From the IMG/VR virus record IMGVR_UViG_3300036944_001289, positions 62,001-126,000 of that record: DNA of 64,000 nucleotides; one strand, written 5' to 3'. The notes under the pieces were generated by a model. It made no database searches. It was not told the DNA's origin and saw only the letters and a list, made by a program, of their open reading frames with translations. This document shows positions 1-18,716 of this stretch, piece by piece. The translations under genes were made by a program, and so were the position numbers. Position 1 is the first letter of the stretch, and each line of letters opens with the position of its first letter.

Positions 1-1398
1 CATTCTATTAAACGTTATGTTATTAACGTAATCTTTTTGTAGTAAAATATTACTCTCATTGTATATACTAAAATGGTTCTTTTGTAATGTACTTGTTAGA
101 TCATTTTGCTCTTGAAACAGCATAAATCTATTGGTATCATATATCATGATATAATCGTAATTATTATCTGTAATTATACTAGAAAATGAAAGGCTTGATA
201 CAGAAGATATGGTGGTATTACCCCATATAAATTTGCCTATTTTATTCTGTAATTTGTTTAAGAATAGCTTATATACATTTTTAGTTGTACTAACATATAC
301 AATGTTACTATCATTATATGATATTTTGATTTTATTACAATATTCGCCTATATCAAGAATGATATTCGTACTAACAACCTCTGCTGTAGTATCTAATAAA
401 GGTGACGATTTTACAATTACACCTGTTTTGGTCAGTATATATAAGTTTCCATTTACATCTTTCTCTATATAACAGGGTTCGTTTGTTTGAAATACTTTAC
501 TATTAACGTATTTTGTAGTAAACGTCATCTTTGAGTTGTATATGTATACTGTAAAAGAAGATCTATCATAGACGTATAATAAATCGTCAATATAACGTAC
601 AACAGATGGTTCAATCAAACCACCTATTATGTGCACTAATTTCGGGTTATTTAAAGAAACTCTACTATTATTGAGTGTTGAGTTAATACTAATCTTATAA
701 ACCTGTTTATTATCCTTATCTGCAATATATAAGTTACCGTTGCTATCTGCATCTATTGAAGATATATTTAAGAAGTTTATTTTTGAAGTTGCGTCTACCG
801 CAGTTGCAGATGCAACTGCTCTAAATGTATTAAATTGATTATTAAAATTAAATATGAAATATGCGCTTGGTGTCTGTGTTACTACGTTTAGATTATCACC
901 GTAAAAATTCTTTACTAATAATATATCACTTATTGCAGTTAGTTGCGGGTTTACAGACTGTATACCATATGCACCGGAGTTAGCTGATGATTTCCAGTTT
1001 AATAAGGTGCCTCCGTTTGAAGTAACAGACGCATAGGCGGTATAACCATTCGGTAAGTTATTAGTTAATGCAGAGCATCGTCTGTATAAATCGAAAAAAT
1101 TACTAATGATTTTACCAATTTTTAAATTAATCGAATTCGAATTTACGATTTCATTACTGCTAAAGGTTATATCCTGTTCGTTATACGGTAACGATGTATC
1201 TGTGAGCGGGGTATAGTTAAAATATCCTTCGTTGATAATAAAATCATTTAAAATGTTAGATTGGTTCTGTAATTGTGCGGAAGTATTTGTATAATATCTA
1301 TTAACATATGCAATATTGTCTTTCAGGTTATAAAAACCTGTATATGCAGACCCGTTATAGGTAAACGTATCACCTTCTGTGTAATTATAAATGTTCAT
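1..1398 (-). CDS. Virion structural protein with NHL/beta-propeller-like repeats (runs off window start; absent from ORF track)
   Basis: Hand translation from ATG at 1398 (ATGA overlap with the upstream stop): MNIYNYTEGDTFTYNG...SSIDADSNGNLYIADKDNKQVYKI...IEKDVNGNLYILTKTG; open to position 1. Confidence 0.7.
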   Translation of the reverse strand, partial: MNIYNYTEGDTFTYNGSAYTGFYNLKDNIAYVNRYYTNTSAQLQNQSNILNDFIINEGYFNYTPLTDTSLPYNEQDITFSSNEIVNSNSINLKIGKIISNFFDLYRRCSALTNNLPNGYTAYASVTSNGGTLLNWKSSANSGAYGIQSVNPQLTAISDILLVKNFYGDNLNVVTQTPSAYFIFNFNNQFNTFRAVASATAVDATSKINFLNISSIDADSNGNLYIADKDNKQVYKISINSTLNNSRVSLNNPKLVHIIGGLIEPSVVRYIDDLLYVYDRSSFTVYIYNSKMTFTTKYVNSKVFQTNEPCYIEKDVNGNLYILTKTGVIVKSSPLLDTTAEVVSTNIILDIGEYCNKIKISYNDSNIVYVSTTKNVYKLFLNKLQNKIGKFIWGNTTISSVSSLSFSSIITDNNYDYIMIYDTNRFMLFQEQNDLTSTLQKNHFSIYNESNILLQKDYVNNITFNRM

Positions 1399-4300
1399 CG
1401 TATGTCAAGATTGTATGTAATATCGCTTATATTTGAAGGTAGTATAGATCTAACTCTATCATTAACTACACTTGTCAAAGAGCTTGCGGTTGTACTATCA
1501 ACGTCTAATCCTTTAATATAAACTAATACTTTATTAGATAATCTACCAGGTATGTTATACTTGAAGATATTATCTACGGTTTCTATAGAATTTCTATCAT
1601 CACAAGTGAAGTCGATGTTTATATTGTCTATAGTTATACCTCTCATATAGAGATACTTAATAAAGTCATCTGATAAGGATATGTTGTATATATTAAAATC
1701 TGATACATCGAAACCTGTTGCAATTATTTTTTGATTTGTTATGTAGTCTGTTATTGACTTGTCACTATAATTCTGATTACCTAAGTATAGAATATTTTTA
1801 ACTATAGTGTCAATAGATAATAAATTAGTAGGTGTACTAATGGAATTAGTTAGTACACCATTAACGTAAACATTAATTACACCGTCGAGTAAATTAAAGT
1901 CCATATCAATATGGTTATCTAGGTATTGTAATGGTATTACGTCAATAATTGAATTATCGTTCAGTACATTAACTGAAGAGTAATTAAACGCCCAATACGA
2001 TACAGGTGTGATTGCAGACCAACTGTGAGCATATGTACTCCATACTCTTGCAGATGTTTGTGTAATAAATGTATTTGGTAAGTTTACTGTTAAACAAAGC
2101 TTATCTTCGTAATTTTTATACGTATTTTCTGCGAAGTAAAATCCAGTACAGTTAACAAACGCGTTATTTCCAGACACTGAAGAAATTGATAGGCTATATG
2201 TTGATAGAATCTTACCTGTAGTAAGGGATATCTTATCAGCAATAATATTATTATTAGTGTCTCTTGAAAAGATTAAAGGTAGAGTTTTATAATCTTCGGA
2301 TATAAAGTCTATTTTGAAACCGTTGACAGCTGACTCTGAAAGGCTTATAGTAGATAATAGCTCTCTATCTGTATTAAAAATCTTTAAGCTATTGTTACTC
2401 TGAATATAGAGATTATTATCGTGACTACTTATATCGTCTATTTTATAGACTGTACTCAACCCGACATACGAGGTATTTGTAGGTAGATTAGTAAACAATA
2501 CATATTTGTCTGATGACAGACTTGCACCAAAAGTATCGTTAATATTTATACCTTTTTCTCCAGGTAATGTAAAGGTACTATCTGTTGATGTGGTAATTAC
2601 TGAACTTGCCCCGTTAGATAGTGTTGTTGAGAGAGCAGTTACGAGTGTCTGTAGATCTGTAATGTAGACAGGGCATGGTGATACATTTTTGGTGGTAAAT
2701 ATAGCTTTATTACCTTTACCATAAAAGTGTCTGCTAGCAACCGATGTTTTAATTCCGTCAGGTATATCTGTATTGTAATTAATTATTTGACCGGTAATGT
2801 CAGTTCTAAATAACCCGTTAGATGTGCGTAATACTATATCTGTTGTTTGTGAAACATAACAGATATCAGATATGTTACCTACAGCAACAGGGTCATATGT
2901 ATTCTTTTTTATAAGATTGAAATCAGTATCATAAAAATACACCGCATTGTTTTGCTGTATAATTATGAAAGGTGTAAAGTAAAAATTTTTACGTAATGCA
3001 AAACCTATATTATAATTGTTACCTAATAACTGATATGCTTTTGCATTTTCGAAATCTTTTGCTTTTATCCTAAAGGATACGTTAAATCTACCAGTACCTA
3101 TACTACCTATATCAAAGCTATCATATACAGAACCGTTAAGTAATAGTTGTTCAGTTTCAGGTTCTTCATTACCTGTATTTATATCGTAAGGTATAATAGT
3201 TTGTCTAAGTAAATTAACGTCTTTACCACTTAAAACATTTTCTATATATTTATTACCTATTCTTGCATAGTAGTAAGTACTATTTGGTTCGAACATTAGT
3301 GCTGACTGTATATCATAAAAATTTAATTTAGTTAGTCCGATATTTTCTACAAAACTATCTAGCTCTGATTTAAATGTAAACACCTGCGATGTACTAGAAC
3401 TGAGTGCATTTATGTATGATGTATTTTGTGGTATATAATATCTATCGTACCAAATACCATCTATGATATTAAACCATGAGCATAAAAATATACCATTTGA
3501 CTCGTTAGCAGTATTAACATTTTTGTTATTATCAAGTAATTTATAAACCCTATCACTAAAGTAAGGAGAAGTTGCAGCGTAAGCACCAGCTTCTTTTAAC
3601 CCGGAATCGTTTATATTAATTCTTGTAAAAGGTGCTATTGTATCAGGCAATGTAAATTTGGTATACTTATCAGGTGTTATTAAGTACTCTTTTGTAAAAA
3701 AATTAAAACCAAGCTGTAATTTTTCGTTAGATGTTTCTTGATAGTCGTTTGTTATAATTGCATTATAATTACGTTGTTGCTTGTTTTTAAAGAAAGGTAC
3801 TCTATTTACAAAGTTATTTTTAGAAGTATAATTTTTTAAGTTAAAAAGATCTACATTACCATCGACTGATGTTGCAGATGGTGTCCAGGTTTCGTAAGGT
3901 GAATATACTAAGAAGTTATTTTTTATATTGGTTAACGAATTATTATTATCTATATTAACACCTGATGTATATAATACAAAATTTTGAGTATTATATACAT
4001 TTGTGTCTCTTGCTTGTCGATTAGTTAAAAAATTTATTCTAGTTTTATTTAGCGCTGAAGGTGTACCTACACTTAAACTATAGACAGCGCTTGAAGGTGC
4101 ACCGTAAACTAACCACCCAGTGCCACTTGTAAGTGTGCAGAATAGGTTAATGATATTATTATCAGAGTCGTATAGATAATTAAAATATGTTGCTGATGCT
4201 GGTGAAAATATTAAGGTGTTGCTAATATTCTCTCGTACAAATAGATATTTTTTGTAATACTTATCATAACTCCAAAGTAAGCATATATTTTCACCACTAG

Positions 4301-4688
4301 TTAATGTATAAAAATCAATTACGAAATTTTGAGCATAACTTGAATTACTTGCTGTTATAGTTGCTTGCGATGCTGAAACCAAACTGTTTGGTATTAATGT
4401 AACGTATTGATTTGGTGTATCTTCTATATAAAGTTGTGTAACAATAGAGTTGTTTAAACGCTCAGGTAAGATCTCATCCATTATATCTTCTTTAGAAAAA
4501 TTAAATGTGAGATAGTTATCTGTATAATTCTTTATTATACAGTCGTTAGAACTTAAGAGAAAATTGTATTCTGTCAATATACTACCTTGCTGTGTACCAT
4601 ACGTAACACTATCAAGATTAGCGGTATCATCTGTAAGCGTGAGATTTACAGGTTTAAGCGTACTATAATATTCAATACCAATAGCCAT
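1395..4688 (-). CDS. Large beta-rich virion structural protein (1097 aa), possible LamG/ConA-like C-terminal domain
   Basis: S/T/N/Y-rich; C-terminal INVYVNG...LYLG...DFNIYN pattern; late-promoter TAAATA just upstream; structural gene context. Confidence 0.55.
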   Translation of the reverse strand: MAIGIEYYSTLKPVNLTLTDDTANLDSVTYGTQQGSILTEYNFLLSSNDCIIKNYTDNYLTFNFSKEDIMDEILPERLNNSIVTQLYIEDTPNQYVTLIPNSLVSASQATITASNSSYAQNFVIDFYTLTSGENICLLWSYDKYYKKYLFVRENISNTLIFSPASATYFNYLYDSDNNIINLFCTLTSGTGWLVYGAPSSAVYSLSVGTPSALNKTRINFLTNRQARDTNVYNTQNFVLYTSGVNIDNNNSLTNIKNNFLVYSPYETWTPSATSVDGNVDLFNLKNYTSKNNFVNRVPFFKNKQQRNYNAIITNDYQETSNEKLQLGFNFFTKEYLITPDKYTKFTLPDTIAPFTRININDSGLKEAGAYAATSPYFSDRVYKLLDNNKNVNTANESNGIFLCSWFNIIDGIWYDRYYIPQNTSYINALSSSTSQVFTFKSELDSFVENIGLTKLNFYDIQSALMFEPNSTYYYARIGNKYIENVLSGKDVNLLRQTIIPYDINTGNEEPETEQLLLNGSVYDSFDIGSIGTGRFNVSFRIKAKDFENAKAYQLLGNNYNIGFALRKNFYFTPFIIIQQNNAVYFYDTDFNLIKKNTYDPVAVGNISDICYVSQTTDIVLRTSNGLFRTDITGQIINYNTDIPDGIKTSVASRHFYGKGNKAIFTTKNVSPCPVYITDLQTLVTALSTTLSNGASSVITTSTDSTFTLPGEKGININDTFGASLSSDKYVLFTNLPTNTSYVGLSTVYKIDDISSHDNNLYIQSNNSLKIFNTDRELLSTISLSESAVNGFKIDFISEDYKTLPLIFSRDTNNNIIADKISLTTGKILSTYSLSISSVSGNNAFVNCTGFYFAENTYKNYEDKLCLTVNLPNTFITQTSARVWSTYAHSWSAITPVSYWAFNYSSVNVLNDNSIIDVIPLQYLDNHIDMDFNLLDGVINVYVNGVLTNSISTPTNLLSIDTIVKNILYLGNQNYSDKSITDYITNQKIIATGFDVSDFNIYNISLSDDFIKYLYMRGITIDNINIDFTCDDRNSIETVDNIFKYNIPGRLSNKVLVYIKGLDVDSTTASSLTSVVNDRVRSILPSNISDITYNLDIR

Positions 4689-4711: not shown

Positions 4712-5530
4712 TTAGCTATCTACATCAGAATACCATTTTTGTAAAACTTCAGTTGAGATAAATTCGCTAAAATGATCAAAAACAGGCTTTGTATCTAAGT
4801 TTAATTCTTTATGACCTATAAAATAATTTTTTACCTTATCTTCAAGTGTTAGCCTATATGGTACACCGTTAGGTCTTGCAAATCTATGTAACCATCGTAA
4901 AAATGGTAGACATAAAACTTTTTTACCATTTTTACGATATTTTTCATGTATATAACCTTCTTCACCACCAAAACCTCTAAATTTAGAGTTAAATCCTAAC
5001 CATGCGTCTTTTCTGCAAGCAAATAGACCCATTCCTTGAGCAGGTATTTCAAACGGTTGATTATTTATATTCAATCCACGAGGATCTGTACCCCAGGTAC
5101 CCCACATTTGACCTCTCCAAACTAAGTCAAAATGTGTGGAAATGTGTTTTATATCATCATATAACAGTGGACCGTGTAATAGATTTCCTTCATCTAACCC
5201 TTTAACAAAAAAATCTATTAATATTTTTATTGATCCTGGATATAGTAGTACGTGACTATCGATACACATAACATACGGTGTATTTGCATATTCAAATATT
5301 TTACCTTTTACGAAAGTTGATGAGTACTCCCTAAAAGGTATAACTTTACCATTTGGAACTGAGGATATAAAACTTCTTAATGCCTCACCATGCTTACTAT
5401 CTGGATTGTTATCAACAACAATTATTTCAATATCGTTAAGTACTTCAGAATGATATAGTCTAATCGACTGTATCGTAAAGTACACACCATCATAATCATC
5501 AAACGTTGGAATTCCAATTGTTAGCTTCAT
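4712..5530 (-). CDS. Family 2 (GT-A) glycosyltransferase
   Basis: LTIGIPTF, IIVVDNNP, YVMCIDSH (DxD-like), FRGFGGEE motifs. Confidence 0.85.
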   Translation of the reverse strand: MKLTIGIPTFDDYDGVYFTIQSIRLYHSEVLNDIEIIVVDNNPDSKHGEALRSFISSVPNGKVIPFREYSSTFVKGKIFEYANTPYVMCIDSHVLLYPGSIKILIDFFVKGLDEGNLLHGPLLYDDIKHISTHFDLVWRGQMWGTWGTDPRGLNINNQPFEIPAQGMGLFACRKDAWLGFNSKFRGFGGEEGYIHEKYRKNGKKVLCLPFLRWLHRFARPNGVPYRLTLEDKVKNYFIGHKELNLDTKPVFDHFSEFISTEVLQKWYSDVDS

Positions 5531-8500
5531 TGTATGTATCTATTAATACCTGTTGTAGTTTATTTTCAACTTCTACAATTTCGAGTTCATTTACAGTTAT
5601 ATCTCTACTATAATAGGAAAATACTCTGCTTGAATAATAATTAATACCATCTAGTCTAGAAGTTGGATTAGGTGGGTATACAACACTAAGTGATTGGTTG
5701 AAATATATTTCTTCTATAGGTACTCTATTAGATATTGGTGTACTGTATACATTAGGTGCTGGGTAATAAGTTCTGGAGGTTAATGCAAAAGAATTTGTTA
5801 ACCCACTATTATAAAACGCCATCACATGGCACCCGTCTGATAATGAAGGTGTACGGGTATTTAAAGGTAATATATCTACTGCTACATCATTACATATTAT
5901 AAGTTGCCACACTCTATAAAGGTAGTAATCTATACCGTTTACTGTTATATTTGTGGCACATGCCGGGAAAGTATGCGTTGTATTTCCTGGTATAATATCC
6001 CGTCTAGACGTAAATTGTAAGGGTGAGTTAAATTCAAGATATTGAGGTGTGTTTGATTGAGTTGTAGTAGTCGTTGTGCTAGTAGTTGTGGTAGGTGTGT
6101 TTGATTGAGTTGTAGTAGTCGTTGTGCTAGTAGTTGTGGTAGGTGCTGTAGATAATGCTATTGTGTTTAATCCAATATTGTAAAATTGTCTACCGGATAA
6201 TGTTATTGTATGTGGTGTCTCAGTTTGAGTCTCTACACTTATGTTTTTTATAACAGGTATATGAGATGGTATCGTTCCAGACCAAGGTGATATATTTAAT
6301 GAGTCTACTATACGGTCTATTCTACAAATAAATCCACTTGCATCGTTAGTAGGCGTTCTACCCGCAAATATCAAACCCACACATTTCCATGTTGATAATG
6401 AAGGTATAGTTGAGCTTAATAAAGCAAATACAGCTGTTCCAGAATCTCCACCCTGGGTTACTGGAAATGCTTTTTCTTTACTTCTCAATGTAATACAGTC
6501 TTTAAATAATAAAGGTTTAGTGTTAGTGTAAACATTTACAAGTGAACTTGCACCTATGCTATCAATTATAATCTTATCGTTCGTTCTATTATTAATACCA
6601 AAACAACCATCTACATTATAGCCTAAAACACTAAAACTACTATTGGAGTTAAAAAGTAGAGTTTCCTTGTTACTGTTACTTGAAGAAAATACACCATATA
6701 CATCATCCGCTGTAATCCCTGGTATTTTCGTAAACGTGTTAGAGTTAGCTTGTGCTTGTATAGCAGTTAAAGGGTTTGTGCTGTATGTTACATTGTAATT
6801 ACTATTACTATCTGTATTCTTTTTAACATAAATTTCACCACCAGATAGAATACCTGTAACTGAATTGTATCCATCATTTACCGCTTTTATATTACCTTTA
6901 AAACTTGGATAAAATATTATACTTGTGCCTTGACTAGATGAACTAAAAATTTCACATAATACATCATTTGTAGATAGTGCAAATAACCTCGAAGATAATA
7001 AATTACAGTCTAATATTTTTTTAAAATTACCAACATTTAAAATATTGCTATTTAATGAATAAGGGGTATTAGTAACAGGAAATGAAGAAAAAGATGCGTA
7101 GTTATAGTAAGAAGGTATAGAATAAAAGATTTTATTACCTGATAATGCAACAAGTGAGTAGTTAAATAAAGCTATTTGGTCCCACTCACCAGGTAACTCA
7201 ACCCAAGTAGTTGTACTATCTGCAGATAGACCATAACCAATAGTCTGACTAGTACTATTGTTTCCTATCACATTTATCTTCTTGTCTTTTAAGATATAAA
7301 TATTTCCGGAATATATTTTTAAATCTATATTATCATAATTAGGTAATTGATTCGGTAGTACGCTGTACCTGTCAGAATAATTATATTGGTATCTAGTGCT
7401 AGTTCCTGACGAGTATAGTTTATTATCTACACCTAAACCTACAAAAAAAGTATTATCTAACCAAACGTCTTTAAACTTCATAGGTAATAGACCAAATTCT
7501 AATCTACTACCACCTGGTACTATATTTATATTACCAAAAAAAAGCAAATTAAAAGAACCATGACCACAGTGATATACGTCTGTACCACTAAAACCAAATA
7601 GAGTTGTACCGTAATATGTTTTATAGTGTTTTACCTTTGTAAATATGCTAGACAATTGTGTTTGATTGGTTATAAGATCTATTGGTACTGCATGGGTATC
7701 TTTTGTATATATGTTTCCAGGAAACCCCATAGGCCCTAATGTTCTACCACTTCTGAATACAGGTGATTGAAAATTAGGTGAATTAGGGTCAAGTAAAGAA
7801 TCAATCTCTTGTGTTGTTGCAAATTGATAAGGTCCAGGTACATTAAACCCTATAACTTGATTAGAAGATGTATCTATAATGTTATAATTTTGTATATGTA
7901 CAAGGGCTGCATCAATGTAATTATTATCTAAATTAAATGTTTGACACCTCTTATGTCTACCTATAGTATGTTGAGGCCATATTGATATAGCACCATAAGG
8001 TGTGTATTGTGAAGATGCTGGCTGCCTTGCAGATAAAATAGCTGTATTTAAATTTGTACCAGATACAGATAGATAACCAGACATTTGACTCTGCGCATAC
8101 ACGTGGTTGTTTGAAAGACAGCAAATCGAGTTATCTGTATTATCTTTAACGATCAATCCTAATGTAGCGTCGGAACCTAATGTATGAATTGATGATACAC
8201 CACTTTTCAATGGTCTATGTATGTTTCTTGAAATACTTAGAGGTATTACAAGAGGGTCCATGGTATTAAAATAGGTTGTTGCTTGGATTTTAATATCTTC
8301 TACTTGGTGCGGTACGTATATAGGTAATTCACCGCTCAAATTCTCTACATTATTATAACTATCTAAAGTACTAATCGTACCAGTCTCTAACACATCTGTA
8401 ATAACGTCTGTACCATCTAAAGTAATTGTTAGAGGTAATATCTCTTCAGGTAACAACTCTTCGATTGATTTCTTTTTTGTAACAAAAAACTTAACACATA

Positions 8501-8618
8501 TCTCATCAGTATCAATTAAATCTACTTCTTTGGTAGATATGCACCAGCCTACAACGTTAGGGTATTGATCTGAAAAATTCTGTGCGTTTAGAAACTCTTT
8601 TAAGCTCGTTATATTCAT
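5499..8618 (-). CDS. Nal1-type trypsin-like serine protease with a large internal insertion and Thr-rich stalk (1039 aa)
   Basis: N-terminal VVG...CVKFFVTKK...ILP...TDVLETG domain; TLG...LSNNHV (His172), IDAAL (Asp236), RSGRTLG, GGDSG (Ser726), VGLIFAG. Confidence 0.75.
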   Translation of the reverse strand: MNITSLKEFLNAQNFSDQYPNVVGWCISTKEVDLIDTDEICVKFFVTKKKSIEELLPEEILPLTITLDGTDVITDVLETGTISTLDSYNNVENLSGELPIYVPHQVEDIKIQATTYFNTMDPLVIPLSISRNIHRPLKSGVSSIHTLGSDATLGLIVKDNTDNSICCLSNNHVYAQSQMSGYLSVSGTNLNTAILSARQPASSQYTPYGAISIWPQHTIGRHKRCQTFNLDNNYIDAALVHIQNYNIIDTSSNQVIGFNVPGPYQFATTQEIDSLLDPNSPNFQSPVFRSGRTLGPMGFPGNIYTKDTHAVPIDLITNQTQLSSIFTKVKHYKTYYGTTLFGFSGTDVYHCGHGSFNLLFFGNINIVPGGSRLEFGLLPMKFKDVWLDNTFFVGLGVDNKLYSSGTSTRYQYNYSDRYSVLPNQLPNYDNIDLKIYSGNIYILKDKKINVIGNNSTSQTIGYGLSADSTTTWVELPGEWDQIALFNYSLVALSGNKIFYSIPSYYNYASFSSFPVTNTPYSLNSNILNVGNFKKILDCNLLSSRLFALSTNDVLCEIFSSSSQGTSIIFYPSFKGNIKAVNDGYNSVTGILSGGEIYVKKNTDSNSNYNVTYSTNPLTAIQAQANSNTFTKIPGITADDVYGVFSSSNSNKETLLFNSNSSFSVLGYNVDGCFGINNRTNDKIIIDSIGASSLVNVYTNTKPLLFKDCITLRSKEKAFPVTQGGDSGTAVFALLSSTIPSLSTWKCVGLIFAGRTPTNDASGFICRIDRIVDSLNISPWSGTIPSHIPVIKNISVETQTETPHTITLSGRQFYNIGLNTIALSTAPTTTTSTTTTTTQSNTPTTTTSTTTTTTQSNTPQYLEFNSPLQFTSRRDIIPGNTTHTFPACATNITVNGIDYYLYRVWQLIICNDVAVDILPLNTRTPSLSDGCHVMAFYNSGLTNSFALTSRTYYPAPNVYSTPISNRVPIEEIYFNQSLSVVYPPNPTSRLDGINYYSSRVFSYYSRDITVNELEIVEVENKLQQVLIDTYNEANNWNSNV
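6045..6145. repeat. Perfect 48-bp tandem duplication encoding PTTTTSTTTTTTQSNT x2
   Basis: aggtgtgtttgattgagttgtagtagtcgttgtgctagtagttgtggt at 6045 and 6093, then a partial third copy. Confidence 0.95.
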
Positions 8619-8619
8619 T

Positions 8620-9846
8620 TTATATTATATTTATATTACCTGAAACTGACGGTGTTAATGCGTTTACGTAGCATATAGTACCTGTAGATGATGGTGTCCA
8701 CATGATTGTACCTGTGGTTATACCTGAGGTACTGTTGTTACCGTATATATCTGTTATTGACGATGTGTCAAGTGCACTATTTCTTATTGCAAACGGTATA
8801 GATGTACCTACTATGAGGTCGTAATTAGTGTTAGCAGATAGTGTAATTGTTGGATTACTACCTGATGATTGATCTGTTCTAAATTCACCACTAAAAGACG
8901 ATACGTTTATAACTACAGAGCTTGAAGTAAACAACATACTATAAACTGTAGTAGTTGGTGAGGGTGTAGTAGTTGTGGTCGTTGTCGTTGTAGTTGTGGT
9001 CGTTGTGGTTGTTGTGGGGTCGGGTGGGTCGATCGGTGGTAGAGTTGTTGTAGTTGTAGTAGTTGTTATTGGTATTTCAGGTTCTGGTATTATAATAGGT
9101 GGTAGGGATATTATAGGATCCGGTGCACTGCCTAATGAAAATAGTAAGTTACCGTCAATACTACCATTAAAATTTATATTTTTAACCTTTATAGGAAAAT
9201 TACCAGACCATGTTATACCTACACGCACACTATCAGGTACTTTACTTAAATCTATATTCGTATTATATGTTACAACTTGTTTATATATATCGTCTTCATA
9301 CGTATATAACGTTACCTGTTGCATATTGTTTTTAAATGCAACTCTAAATACATTCCATTCATCATTGAATGGTTTTGCAAAACCAGGTATATAATTCGAA
9401 CCAACGTATTCAAATGAGGATAGTTTTCTTACAACAAAGCTACTAGGCTGTAATGTATTAGTACCTGTATTAAATTGTTGTAATCCACCGTTTGATGTAA
9501 AAATACCATCTACATCATACATCGCACACATAAAAAAACCACTAACTGCTGAAAAAGGTGTTGTGTTAGTATCCGTAATAATACCTAAACCACCACCAGC
9601 ACCACCACCAGTTAATGTAGTTACTCTGCTATCTAATAGAAATACACCAAAACCATCATATATTGTGGAGAACTGCAAACCTAAAAAGTCATCATTTTGC
9701 AATAAGAGTCTGTCACCTGTTTGCAATAATAAGTTACCTAAAGATACTCTTTCTTCAGGGTCTTGTATCAAAAACGAAACAGTTATATCATTATCTGTTT
9801 TAAATGCTTGTTTATAAAGTATATTGCTACAAAAACCTGATGACAT
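8620..9846 (-). CDS. Virion protein: lectin/ConA-like N-domain, Pro/Thr-rich linker, small beta-sandwich C-domain
   Basis: DGFGVFL...GGGLG and VRVGITWSG resemble legume-lectin-type motifs; PIITTTTTTTTT/PDPTTTT(18) linker; WTP..GTICY...SGNI C-terminus; TAAATA-N5-ATG. Confidence 0.55.
   Translation of the reverse strand: MSSGFCSNILYKQAFKTDNDITVSFLIQDPEERVSLGNLLLQTGDRLLLQNDDFLGLQFSTIYDGFGVFLLDSRVTTLTGGGAGGGLGIITDTNTTPFSAVSGFFMCAMYDVDGIFTSNGGLQQFNTGTNTLQPSSFVVRKLSSFEYVGSNYIPGFAKPFNDEWNVFRVAFKNNMQQVTLYTYEDDIYKQVVTYNTNIDLSKVPDSVRVGITWSGNFPIKVKNINFNGSIDGNLLFSLGSAPDPIISLPPIIIPEPEIPITTTTTTTTLPPIDPPDPTTTTTTTTTTTTTTTTTPSPTTTVYSMLFTSSSVVINVSSFSGEFRTDQSSGSNPTITLSANTNYDLIVGTSIPFAIRNSALDTSSITDIYGNNSTSGITTGTIMWTPSSTGTICYVNALTPSVSGNINII
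8945..9070. repeat. Low-complexity poly-Thr codon tract
   Basis: Runs of (gtt/gta/gtg/gtc) on the + strand are ACN codons on the - strand. Confidence 0.9.
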
Positions 9847-9867: not shown

Positions 9868-10347
9868 TCAATTAGTAAAGAACCCGGATTTATCTAAAGT
9901 ACCTTTAAATTTAACTTGTTGTGTTTTGAATCTTGGTATTACAATTGTAAAATCGATAATATATTGAGATTCATCAAAAAGAGGTGTGACATTTATATTT
10001 TTAATAGATATCCTAGGTTCAAACTTGGTAACTGCATTTAATATTGTTTCACCTACGAGTCTTGCACGTTGCTCTGTTACAGGTAAGAATAGAAGGTCCC
10101 CAAAGTTGCAGCCAAAAGGTGGATTTAATATTTTTTCCCCTGGTGATGTAGTTAGTATACTCGTTATTGAGTTCTTAATTGCACCTTCGTTATTGTCAAC
10201 TTGTATATCAGCAATTTGACGTATTTTAGCTAGCTCATCACTAAACGTTCTATTTAGCTGTAAATCCATTCTAATATCGGTGTATATATTAGTGTTACTT
10301 CTATTTGCATCTGTATTTTGTAAAAAATCTAGCACAATCTTTGCCAT
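9868..10347 (-). CDS. gp25: Baseplate wedge protein gp25-like
   Basis: AIKNSITSILTTSPGEKILNPPFG...FEPRI signature. Confidence 0.9.
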   Translation of the reverse strand: MAKIVLDFLQNTDANRSNTNIYTDIRMDLQLNRTFSDELAKIRQIADIQVDNNEGAIKNSITSILTTSPGEKILNPPFGCNFGDLLFLPVTEQRARLVGETILNAVTKFEPRISIKNINVTPLFDESQYIIDFTIVIPRFKTQQVKFKGTLDKSGFFTN

Positions 10348-17093: not shown

Positions 17094-18716
17094 TTATGTG
17101 TAAGCTCGTTGTAGGTCTCTTATAGAGGTTGTTTGAAATACATTTGTGACAGTATTATTTGTAGATACTACGCTATTATTGTTATTATTAATATTGGATA
17201 TTTTATTAGCTAATTCAGCTAATAATCTCTTGCTTTCATCTAATATTTCTAATTGCTTATATAATAGCTTATTGGATTCATCTGTTGCCTGTTTTAGTTT
17301 AACTAAATCTTGACTATTACTATCTACACCACCATCTACAGACTCGTAATTGATTGGGTTGATAGATTCGTCTGCATCTTCAGGGAAAGGATCTTTGTTA
17401 GTATCTTCTATATCTATTTTAGTCGGGAAGGGTATTTGATTAGGAGATGCTTCATCGGTTAGTGCATCTATGTTTTCTTCTTTATTTGCTTTTGCTTTTT
17501 CTATTTTAAGTTTTTCTGTAGCTGCTTTTTCTTCTGCTTCAGACTTTGCAATCTCTGCTTCTATACCTGGTATATCCAGACCCATTACAGACGCTAGTTT
17601 ACCTTTGACACTAACACCAAAGATTTCAAAATCGGGTATCATATTCCAAAGACCTAGTACTAGTTTATTTTTTATCTTTTTAAAGAAATCTACTAACATT
17701 ACACCTTTTGGTTTTGCTTTACCTCCTGCTACATCTGAACCACCTGCTTTATAATCCAAGAAAGCATTTAATACGCCTAGACCTATACTTAAAGCGGTTC
17801 CATAACCAGGTACTATACTTGCTATACCCGAGGCTACGTCAATTAACCCACCAACGACATCACCCTTTTTAAATCTAGTATATGCAGAGTACCAATCAAT
17901 TAAACTTCCAATACCTGGTATTCTTCTCAAGATCGGTTTAAGTATTTTTGAAGCACCACTAAGAATTTTTGTAAAAAGGTCTTTACCTAAACCTTTAGTG
18001 ATACCTATAAAAGGCTTTAATAGTCCTGTTGTAAGTCTTTTAAAACCTTCTTTTATAGGTCCAAATATTTTTTTGAAAAAATCTATAGGCATTATAGACT
18101 TTACTTTATTTAAAATAAAACCTATACCTTTCATTACTGTTAATGCAACTTTCTTAAATGCACCTTTTAGTCCAGAAAAACCACTCTCAATCAAATCGAG
18201 TGGTAGTAGATTTTTGATAAACTTTAATAACCCTGAAACCTTTTTAAGTAAAACGTTACGCATCCACTTTATACCCGCTAATATACCACCTTTACCTAGT
18301 AGTGTGAGTAAACCTTTTAGTGGGCCATCATTTAATAACCCCATAATAAGTGCCGCTAATCCGCTAAGTATTAATAGTGCAGGCCCTATTAAACCTTTTA
18401 TAAATTTCATAAAACCACTGTCCTCCTTAACAGCTTCTTCCTTTTTAATTGTTTTTGCTGTAGGTATTAGTGATTTTAACTTTCTTAAAGCTTTAACCCC
18501 GATATCATCTAAAGACATCGGTATCAACTCCTTAACAACACTTTCTTGTTTAGGATTTTGTCGAATATTGTTACCTAAGACATTTTTTACATTTTCAGGT
18601 GCCTTTTTTGATTTATCAGAGATAGGCTTATCTTTAGACGCAGCAATATGTTCTGACAATCTTCCTGTTGTTTGTGTTAGTAATAATAATACATCAGCTA
18701 GACTTCTATCTGCCAT
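17094..18716 (-). CDS. Tape-measure-like protein
   Basis: Amphipathic G/K/L/F repeats, hydrophobic segments, RIPGIGSLI...GDVVGGLI motif, baseplate context. Confidence 0.6.
   Translation of the reverse strand: MADRSLADVLLLLTQTTGRLSEHIAASKDKPISDKSKKAPENVKNVLGNNIRQNPKQESVVKELIPMSLDDIGVKALRKLKSLIPTAKTIKKEEAVKEDSGFMKFIKGLIGPALLILSGLAALIMGLLNDGPLKGLLTLLGKGGILAGIKWMRNVLLKKVSGLLKFIKNLLPLDLIESGFSGLKGAFKKVALTVMKGIGFILNKVKSIMPIDFFKKIFGPIKEGFKRLTTGLLKPFIGITKGLGKDLFTKILSGASKILKPILRRIPGIGSLIDWYSAYTRFKKGDVVGGLIDVASGIASIVPGYGTALSIGLGVLNAFLDYKAGGSDVAGGKAKPKGVMLVDFFKKIKNKLVLGLWNMIPDFEIFGVSVKGKLASVMGLDIPGIEAEIAKSEAEEKAATEKLKIEKAKANKEENIDALTDEASPNQIPFPTKIDIEDTNKDPFPEDADESINPINYESVDGGVDSNSQDLVKLKQATDESNKLLYKQLEILDESKRLLAELANKISNINNNNNSVVSTNNTVTNVFQTTSIRDLQRAYT

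Follow-up and report, generated by a model that had tools for sequence, protein, structure and literature searches.

The 64,000-nucleotide window studied here (bases 62001 to 126000 of the 209,282-bp virus record IMGVR_UViG_3300036944_001289, which has direct terminal repeats and ~31% G+C) encodes a protein of 1,039 amino acids, P0001, that we identify from sequence comparison and structure modeling as a putative NAL1-like serine endopeptidase of the chymotrypsin fold (PA clan) with a complete RCC1-like β-propeller nested in its catalytic domain. NAL1-like proteases and RCC1-like propellers are both known already; their nesting and the phage protein family in which it is found are described neither in Pfam nor in the papers that we found. 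The gene is one open frame on the minus strand (5499 to 8618, with the stop codon at 5499 to 5501; 1,039 codons in the standard bacterial code), and the N-terminal start of the protein, MNIT.LK, is kept in homologues. A first-pass annotation of the window had proposed a Nal1-type protease split by a propeller-like insert of ~380 residues and then resumed, an interpretation supported by the evidence presented below; virion association, activity, and substrate are inferred rather than shown.

P0001 begins with an α/β domain (residues 1 to 84; 8367 to 8618, on the minus strand like all parts of the gene) equivalent to the ATP-binding domain (ABD) of NAL1, known in Pfam as NAL1_N. It is modeled with a predicted local distance difference test (pLDDT) score of ~90 and contains the sole PHROG match of the protein, to PHROG 20754 "protease" (residues 20 to 84; 1.7e-14). 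A variable linker that differs in length among homologues (residues 85 to 119; 8262 to 8366; pLDDT 38 to 61) leads to the protease, of which the N-terminal barrel, the interdomain helix, and the first strand of the C-terminal barrel (residues 120 to 301; 7716 to 8261; pLDDT 86 to 97) superpose on NAL1 in the model. This first part carries H172 (codon 8103 to 8105) and D236 (codon 7911 to 7913) in the N-terminal barrel and ends with the SGRTLG motif that contains R292. The predicted seven-bladed propeller occupies residues 302 to 681 (6576 to 7715), and the rest of the C-terminal barrel, the C-terminal helix, and a W779-x-G781 motif follow at residues 682 to 790 (6249 to 6575; pLDDT 78 to 97), with S726 (codon 6441 to 6443) lying within G724-D725-S726-G727. 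Beyond the protease are a conserved β-hairpin tail of the TITLSGRQFYNIG type, a consensus of three alignments (residues 791 to 819; 6162 to 6248; strands 804 to 807 and 810 to 813 at pLDDT ~80), a Thr-rich linker of two 16-residue units (residues 820 to 856; 6051 to 6161), and a distal C-terminal domain predicted to be rich in β-strands with a terminal helix at ~1014 to 1038 (residues 857 to 1039; 5502 to 6050). A motif search located SNNHV at residues 169 to 173, IDAA at 235 to 238, RSGRTLGPMGFPG at 289 to 301, and GGDSG at 723 to 727, and the positions first assigned to H172, D236, and S726 proved exact. The break in the fold that had been placed at ~7710 to 6575 corresponds to residues 303 to 681, matching the break site at ~302 to 681, and the three blade-like motifs quoted for the insert lie at residues 395 to 405, 442 to 454, and 665 to 674.

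The catalytic residues are conserved in the His-Asp-Ser order of NAL1-like proteases. H172, D236, G724, D725, S726, and G727 do not vary among 76 homologues, whether these carry the insert or not, and identity within this set is as low as 25 to 30%; R292 is nearly invariant in the same alignment, and GDSG, W779, and G781 are invariant within the insert-bearing clade. When a profile of insert-free family members was compared with the sequences in the PDB, the only significant matches were nine distinct chain sequences of rice NAL1 (11 PDB entries; E 4e-8 to 2e-7), aligned over NAL1 residues 114 to 239, while chymotrypsin and other PA-clan enzymes trailed at E ≥ 0.013. A phmmer search of PDB sequences with P0001 itself returned low-complexity noise only. 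In NAL1, an N-terminal region is followed by an ATP-binding domain (residues 89 to 172) and a serine-protease domain (residues 184 to 458) with the triad H234, D291, and S385 (PMC12012508). The profile result and the structural superposition described next bear out the designation of P0001 as Nal1-type.

An AlphaFold2 model built with the 76-sequence alignment suggests that the protease fold is assembled from both sides of the insert. Residues 1 to 84, 120 to 305, and 680 to 820 were modeled mostly at pLDDT 78 to 97, down to 68 at the 301-310 junction; residues 390 to 680 were mostly at 60 to 95, with short dips below 50 at 614 to 619 and 670 to 678, and everything beyond residue 829 fell below 30. 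In a Foldseek search of the PDB with this model, the top matches were RCC1-like propellers and rice NAL1, all at E of ~1e-8. The alignment to NAL1 begins at NAL1 residue 92 and model residue 1, and thus takes in the N-terminal ABD, and it ends at model residue 788, with 328 residues aligned over both barrels. Since only 305 residues precede the insert, ~35 of them disordered, an alignment of 328 residues is possible only if the two halves of the protease fit NAL1 together, as one rigid body. In the model, the protease fold is thus shown to close around the insert, and the absence of an assembled triad, which the first-pass annotation had named as grounds for rejecting its reading, is not what the superposed halves indicate. 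The last strand before the insert spans residues 287 to 297 and the next strand residues 683 to 694, so that the insert falls within the hairpin formed by strands one and two of the C-terminal barrel. In a viral structure library, the best match was a 449-residue uncharacterized protein of Virus NIOZ-UU157 (BFVD A0A7S9XDX3; 861 columns, template modeling score 0.70 when normalized to the target), which is an insert-free relative matched across the gap.

Sequence and model together identify the insert as a complete, diverged RCC1-like propeller with the seven blades characteristic of such domains. The insert alignment shows RCC1-type blade motifs, and its profile aligned to P0137 with an hhalign probability of 97.3% (E 2.4e-11, 308 columns). 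P0137 belongs to the RCC1 family by its NCBI name and by Pfam (RCC1, 8.9e-60), and 11 stretches of it match the clade profile. The resemblance to RCC1 blades noted in the first-pass annotation is borne out by this alignment and by the propeller matches in Foldseek. Other comparisons of the insert were weak or negative: the insert profile found no PDB sequence, BLASTP of the insert against the RCC1 fiber of the same phage was not significant, and hhalign of the insert against itself gave a weak repeat signal (probability ≤34%). BLIP-II, also named at first as a likeness, was not among the 50 entries listed by either PDB structure search.

Comparison with relatives indicates that the insert was acquired once, within a large family that otherwise lacks it. 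A word search recovered 13 relatives, of which 11 have the whole architecture at 35 to 48% identity and two (P0013 and P0014) are without the middle part, having ~60 residues from SGRTTG to GDSGS. A profile of 12 full-length proteins searched against 1.84 billion representatives gave 2,005 matches at E ≤ 1e-3 and 116 at E ≤ 1e-30, some of them RCC1 proteins that match the insert part. Among the best 150 matches, 22 clusters match the full profile in a single stretch, and nearly all others are proteins of 400 to 450 residues that match in three stretches (profile positions 1 to 90, 135 to 320, and 735 to 870) and skip the middle. Homologues lacking the insert, which the first-pass annotation had suggested seeking, thus exist, and most are of this short kind: the distance from GRTxG to GDSG is 55 to 70 residues in the short proteins versus 433 to 810 in the 22 long ones. 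When aligned to a hidden Markov model (HMM) built from 44 insert-free proteins, each of the 22 long proteins is interrupted at HMM position 262 to 266, and the flanks of the insert are conserved, with GRTLGPxGYPGN before it and D-IIV--IG after it. The insert itself ranges from 379 amino acids in P0001, the shortest, to 756 amino acids; the insert-bearing clusters are defined at the 50% identity level, and the insert alignment is shallow.

In a tree of the core of 141 representatives with the insert cut out (IQ-TREE, LG+G4), the 22 insert-bearing proteins fall on one side of a single branch, with support of 99 in the Shimodaira-Hasegawa-like approximate likelihood ratio test (SH-aLRT) and one change of state versus a mean of 20.6 when states were shuffled; the search behind this tree was a quick one with no mixture model, and its star values are to be trusted less than those of a careful run. 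The identical insertion site backs this grouping. Because NAL1, the general chymotrypsin fold, and most of the family lack the insert, one gain is the parsimonious reading; these sequence comparisons show that the insert arose a single time in a large family otherwise free of it. Additional segments are found at other places in P0024, P0051, P0125, and P0047/P0050/P0064: one location separates the N-terminal domain from the protease, another follows the His strand, and a third is at HMM position ~213. These insertions at other loops indicate that the scaffold tolerates insertions; by the sequences at hand, the site used by the propeller is specific to one group of the family.

Relatives were found in uncultured phages only within the reach of the searches made. 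Members of the protease family are carried by 13 IMG/VR contigs, and an identical copy of P0001 lies on a second IMG/VR contig (L006). We found no homologue in 50,697 GenBank phage records (tblastn of P0001, P0011, and P0065) and hence no cultured relative, and two clade-specific patterns recovered no relative from the genomes of 185,579 species, an absence of the insert-bearing clade that holds only within the reach of the patterns. No paper that we found links NAL1 to phages or describes the propeller nesting or the phage family, and the papers searched do not discuss relatives of NAL1 outside plants.

The hairpin tail (~791 to 819) is common to many insert-free family members. The Thr stalk and distal domain that had been recognized after the protease are recovered as Thr-rich units at residues 827 to 853 and a domain at 857 to 1039. 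The units are encoded by a perfect 48-bp tandem repeat (6045 to 6145; 2.1 copies, 100% match), which points to a recent duplication and suggests, from the sequence, that the length of the linker is variable. P0013 and P0014 likewise have Thr/Pro-rich linkers after the protease, and C-terminal extensions in the family are long and variable, reaching ~2,400 amino acids. For the distal domain, two word searches, an Atlas search, and BLASTP against all open reading frames (ORFs) of the genome found no relative, only a short resemblance in the truncated P0005, and its models have pLDDT below 35 (32 when folded alone).

By its genes, the source of the window is an uncultured, distant relative of T4-like myoviruses. 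The 209,282-bp record encodes a contractile-tail sheath, a large terminase, a family-B DNA polymerase, a clamp loader, a primase, and a DnaB-type helicase; the replication genes are T4-like, and the polymerase has only ~30% identity to those of T4-like cyanophages. P0001 lies in a minus-strand operon with the order gp25-like wedge, 408-residue ORF, P0001, family-2 glycosyltransferase (GT2), 1,097-residue ORF, 567-residue ORF, and 226-residue tail protein, opposite a plus-strand block with a gp6-like wedge and an 874-residue tail fiber. The gp25-like baseplate wedge gene (9868 to 10347, minus strand; phrog_261 and phrog_43), 1.2 kb upstream of P0001 on the same strand, assigns the operon to a baseplate/tail block, and PF04965 occupies the same relative position in L003. 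Within 15 kb of P0001 lie the gp6-like wedge, the fiber, and the tail protein, which places the gene in the tail/baseplate module, and the gene order is akin in L003, L007, L008, and L016. The 874-residue fiber (plus strand, L002:13386-16010, equal to G000:58385-61009, just left of the window) combines a Phage Tail Collar domain, a Gp10_C-like part, and RCC1 repeats (Pfam RCC1, 5e-28); the phage that encodes P0001 therefore also employs an RCC1 propeller as a distal tail-fiber module.

Two neighbors of the protease gene are conserved together with it. The upstream ORF of 408 amino acids (8620 to 9846, minus strand) retains its last ~110 residues before insert-bearing proteases: in tblastn, residues 301 to 408 (8620 to 8945) have counterparts of 45 to 47% identity right next to the protease, on its upstream side, in each of the five other insert-bearing loci that were compared (L003, L004, L007, L008, and L016), while no match at E ≤ 1e-4 was found in the remaining fetched loci. 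The N-terminal parts of the upstream proteins vary between insert-bearing loci (179 versus 408 amino acids), and the conserved C-terminal module could be a partner or adaptor domain. The downstream GT2 gene (4712 to 5530, minus strand; Pfam Glycos_transf_2, 1.5e-8) shares 32 nucleotides with the 3' end of the protease gene and also follows the protease in three other insert-bearing loci at 54 to 56% identity (55% for the gene after P0003; also L004 and L007), exceeding the conservation of the protease itself (38%). GT2 adjoins the gene for a Thr-rich linker, and O-glycosylation of the linker may be considered as an idea on the basis of this adjacency.

Farther downstream, the 1,097-residue ORF (1395 to 4688, minus strand) has no match in Pfam or PHROG, but homologues with 29% identity follow the protease in L008 and L016; an Atlas feature search gave a weak lead (score 0.82) to viral proteins with LamG/ConA-like lectin domains. 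The 567-residue ORF (window 1 to 1398 and on to G000:61695, minus strand) has a Pfam NHL/propeller-repeat signal below threshold (0.0047), and the 226-residue tail protein after it matches phrog_6465/5717; both are probably further fiber components of the operon. A 540-residue ORF at 17094 to 18716 (minus strand) weakly matches PHROG 23178 "peptidase" (5.4e-7, residues 240 to 316), so that the structural region may hold a second peptidase-like gene. On the 200-kb contig L005, a 405-residue paralogue of the protease (6781 to 7998, plus strand) precedes the insert-free P0161 (396 amino acids; 8001 to 9191, plus strand); it has the KSGRTTG, SNNHV, and VDAA motifs, and the protease is thus tandemly duplicated there. 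That insert-free relative lies among giant genes with fn3, BP74_N, FGE-sulfatase, and RCC1-repeat domains. The 408-residue protein upstream of P0001 was considered as a match of the 405-residue protein upstream of P0161; the two are unrelated, the latter being the paralogous protease.

We consider it somewhat better than an even prospect, judging from sequence and gene context, that P0001 is an active endopeptidase targeted by its propeller, most likely carried by the tail and acting on a component of the host surface. R292, which we take to be Arg138 (α-lytic protease/SGPB numbering), the residue of the GRTTG motif that pairs with Asp194 in bacterial enzymes, would pair with D725 as the equivalent of Asp194, and we propose that because of this pairing no zymogen activation would be needed. 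By the same presumed correspondence, the insert would occupy the place of the chymotrypsin autolysis loop, at the rim of the cleft, where the propeller might serve as an exosite or ligand-binding module, keeping the protease on its target or selecting the substrate, a proposal in line with the use of RCC1 propellers as distal modules in the tail fiber of the same phage. The linker and distal domain would then offer a second point of attachment. An extension of this scheme, in which the propeller is a switch and the protease is activated or unblocked only when a host-surface ligand binds, making it a receptor-triggered virion protease, seems improbable to us.

Several observations weigh against the reading of P0001 as a tail-borne NAL1-like protease targeted by an RCC1-like propeller. 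The Arg138 mapping and the autolysis-loop position drawn from it are assumptions of ours. P0001, whole and in four pieces, has no significant Pfam match; for NAL1_N (PF25608) none was found in P0001 and homologues reach 14.7 to 18.3 bits against a cut-off of 27, so the relationship to NAL1 is remote, at the superfamily level, and for RCC1/WD40_RLD none was found in P0001 and the best homologue (P0002) reaches 27.6 bits against 150. In the P0001 model, pLDDT is only ~45 over the initial ~85 residues of the insert (305 to 390), and the global predicted template modeling score (pTM) is only 0.60. A gene may lie in a structural block without encoding a structural protein, and NAL1, the only characterized relative, is an intracellular regulatory protease that forms a hexameric cage (PMC12012508).

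An alternative is a role within the infected cell, with P0001 processing tail or baseplate proteins of the phage or degrading a host protein, and with the propeller recruiting the substrate. We regard such a protease, which would not be a virion component, as unlikely, though the most serious of the alternatives: apart from the precedent of NAL1, P0001 has no signal peptide or obvious baseplate-attachment domain, the conserved C-terminal module upstream and the genes downstream that accompany the protease would fit a co-encoded substrate or partner, and two tandem paralogues in a related phage would be unusual for a fixed structural component. Nevertheless, the Thr/Pro-rich linkers and the variable C-terminal extensions of up to ~2,400 residues in the family resemble receptor-binding fiber proteins, the genes lie among fiber-like genes with fn3, RCC1, Collar, and PKD domains, and head maturation has its own protease, a T4-type prohead protease (Peptidase_S77, 104 bits, above the cut-off) encoded ~100 kb from P0001 (G000:166610-167053, minus strand, L019). 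Given that gene, a role of P0001 in capsid maturation is unlikely, and P0001 itself has no Pfam or PHROG match to prohead proteases.

The conservation pattern downstream of S726 raises the further idea that P0001 cuts its own chain near W779-x-G781, releasing or maturing the linker and distal domain much as the alphavirus capsid protease cleaves in cis. Within the clade, W779 and G781 never vary; they lie ~53 residues after S726, a spacing that would resemble Ser215-Trp264 of the Sindbis capsid protease, and the parts beyond W-x-G vary or are absent, with P0011, P0012, and similar proteins ending a few residues later. The conserved Trp may be purely structural, however, and the many members without cargo past W-x-G mean that cis-cleavage is not a general role of the family; we find self-processing of P0001 quite improbable. 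Large insertions into catalytic barrels often accompany loss of function, and the protease fold might be a dead platform that displays the propeller; nothing direct speaks for this, and we hold it to be very improbable, as the His, Asp, Ser, oxyanion-hole Gly, and Asp before the Ser are invariant across the 76 sequences and within the insert-bearing clade. That the window comes from a metagenome-derived virus record would allow for an assembly chimera, a frameshift, or a miscalled gene fusion, yet the same architecture with the same site in 22 clusters from independent samples and sources, the identical copy on the second contig, and a frame that is open throughout make an artifact extremely improbable.

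Set beside known systems, P0001 combines familiar parts in an unfamiliar arrangement. Rice NAL1 (PDB 8pmi, 7y77, 8has, 8pmg, and 8hau) has a tight turn where P0001 has the 380-residue propeller; it has a plant-specific N-terminal region (residues 1 to 88), lacks the Thr linker and distal domain, and acts inside plant cells as a trimer-of-dimers cage. The insert-free family members (P0025, P0065, P0161, and A0A7S9XDX3) share with P0001 the N-terminal domain, triad, SGRTTG, GDSG, W-x-G, and hairpin tail and likewise sit among large fiber-like genes on contigs of up to 200 kb, but they have the short GRTxG-GDSG spacing and no propeller, P0001 belonging to the single sub-branch that gained the insert. 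The RCC1-like domains (RLDs) of UVR8, HERC1/2, RCC1, RPGR, and the phage fiber modules annotated as "regulator of chromosome condensation" are stand-alone or terminal, in contrast to that of P0001, which is nested in a loop and is too diverged to pass the RCC1 and WD40_RLD thresholds. The seven-bladed propeller lectins PLL and PHL of Photorhabdus scored below RCC1-like proteins and may serve as an analogy only. In subtilases such as plant SBT3 and the streptococcal C5a peptidase, a binding domain, the PA domain, is nested in a catalytic loop of a serine protease; that case differs from P0001 in involving the subtilisin fold (clan SB) and another inserted domain. We are aware of no propeller nested in a chymotrypsin-fold barrel that has been described before, and the papers searched contained none.

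P0001 is a clear natural example of a whole 380-residue domain nested in a chymotrypsin-fold β-barrel with the catalytic residues kept, and domain nesting of this kind is of interest both for protein evolution and for the engineering of proteases that carry their own targeting domain. The analysis also brings to light a large family of NAL1-like proteases from uncultured phages, with ~2,000 profile matches and no entry in Pfam, which provides an evolutionary and structural comparison set for rice NAL1, a protease of agronomic importance for yield. If P0001 is borne on the tail, the polysaccharide depolymerases of phage tails would have a proteolytic counterpart in it, and a receptor-triggered virion protease, if true, would be a mechanism undescribed for phage entry. 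Were the propeller indeed such a switch, the plant yield regulator NAL1 would belong to a superfamily whose main diversity lies in proteases of phage tail modules.

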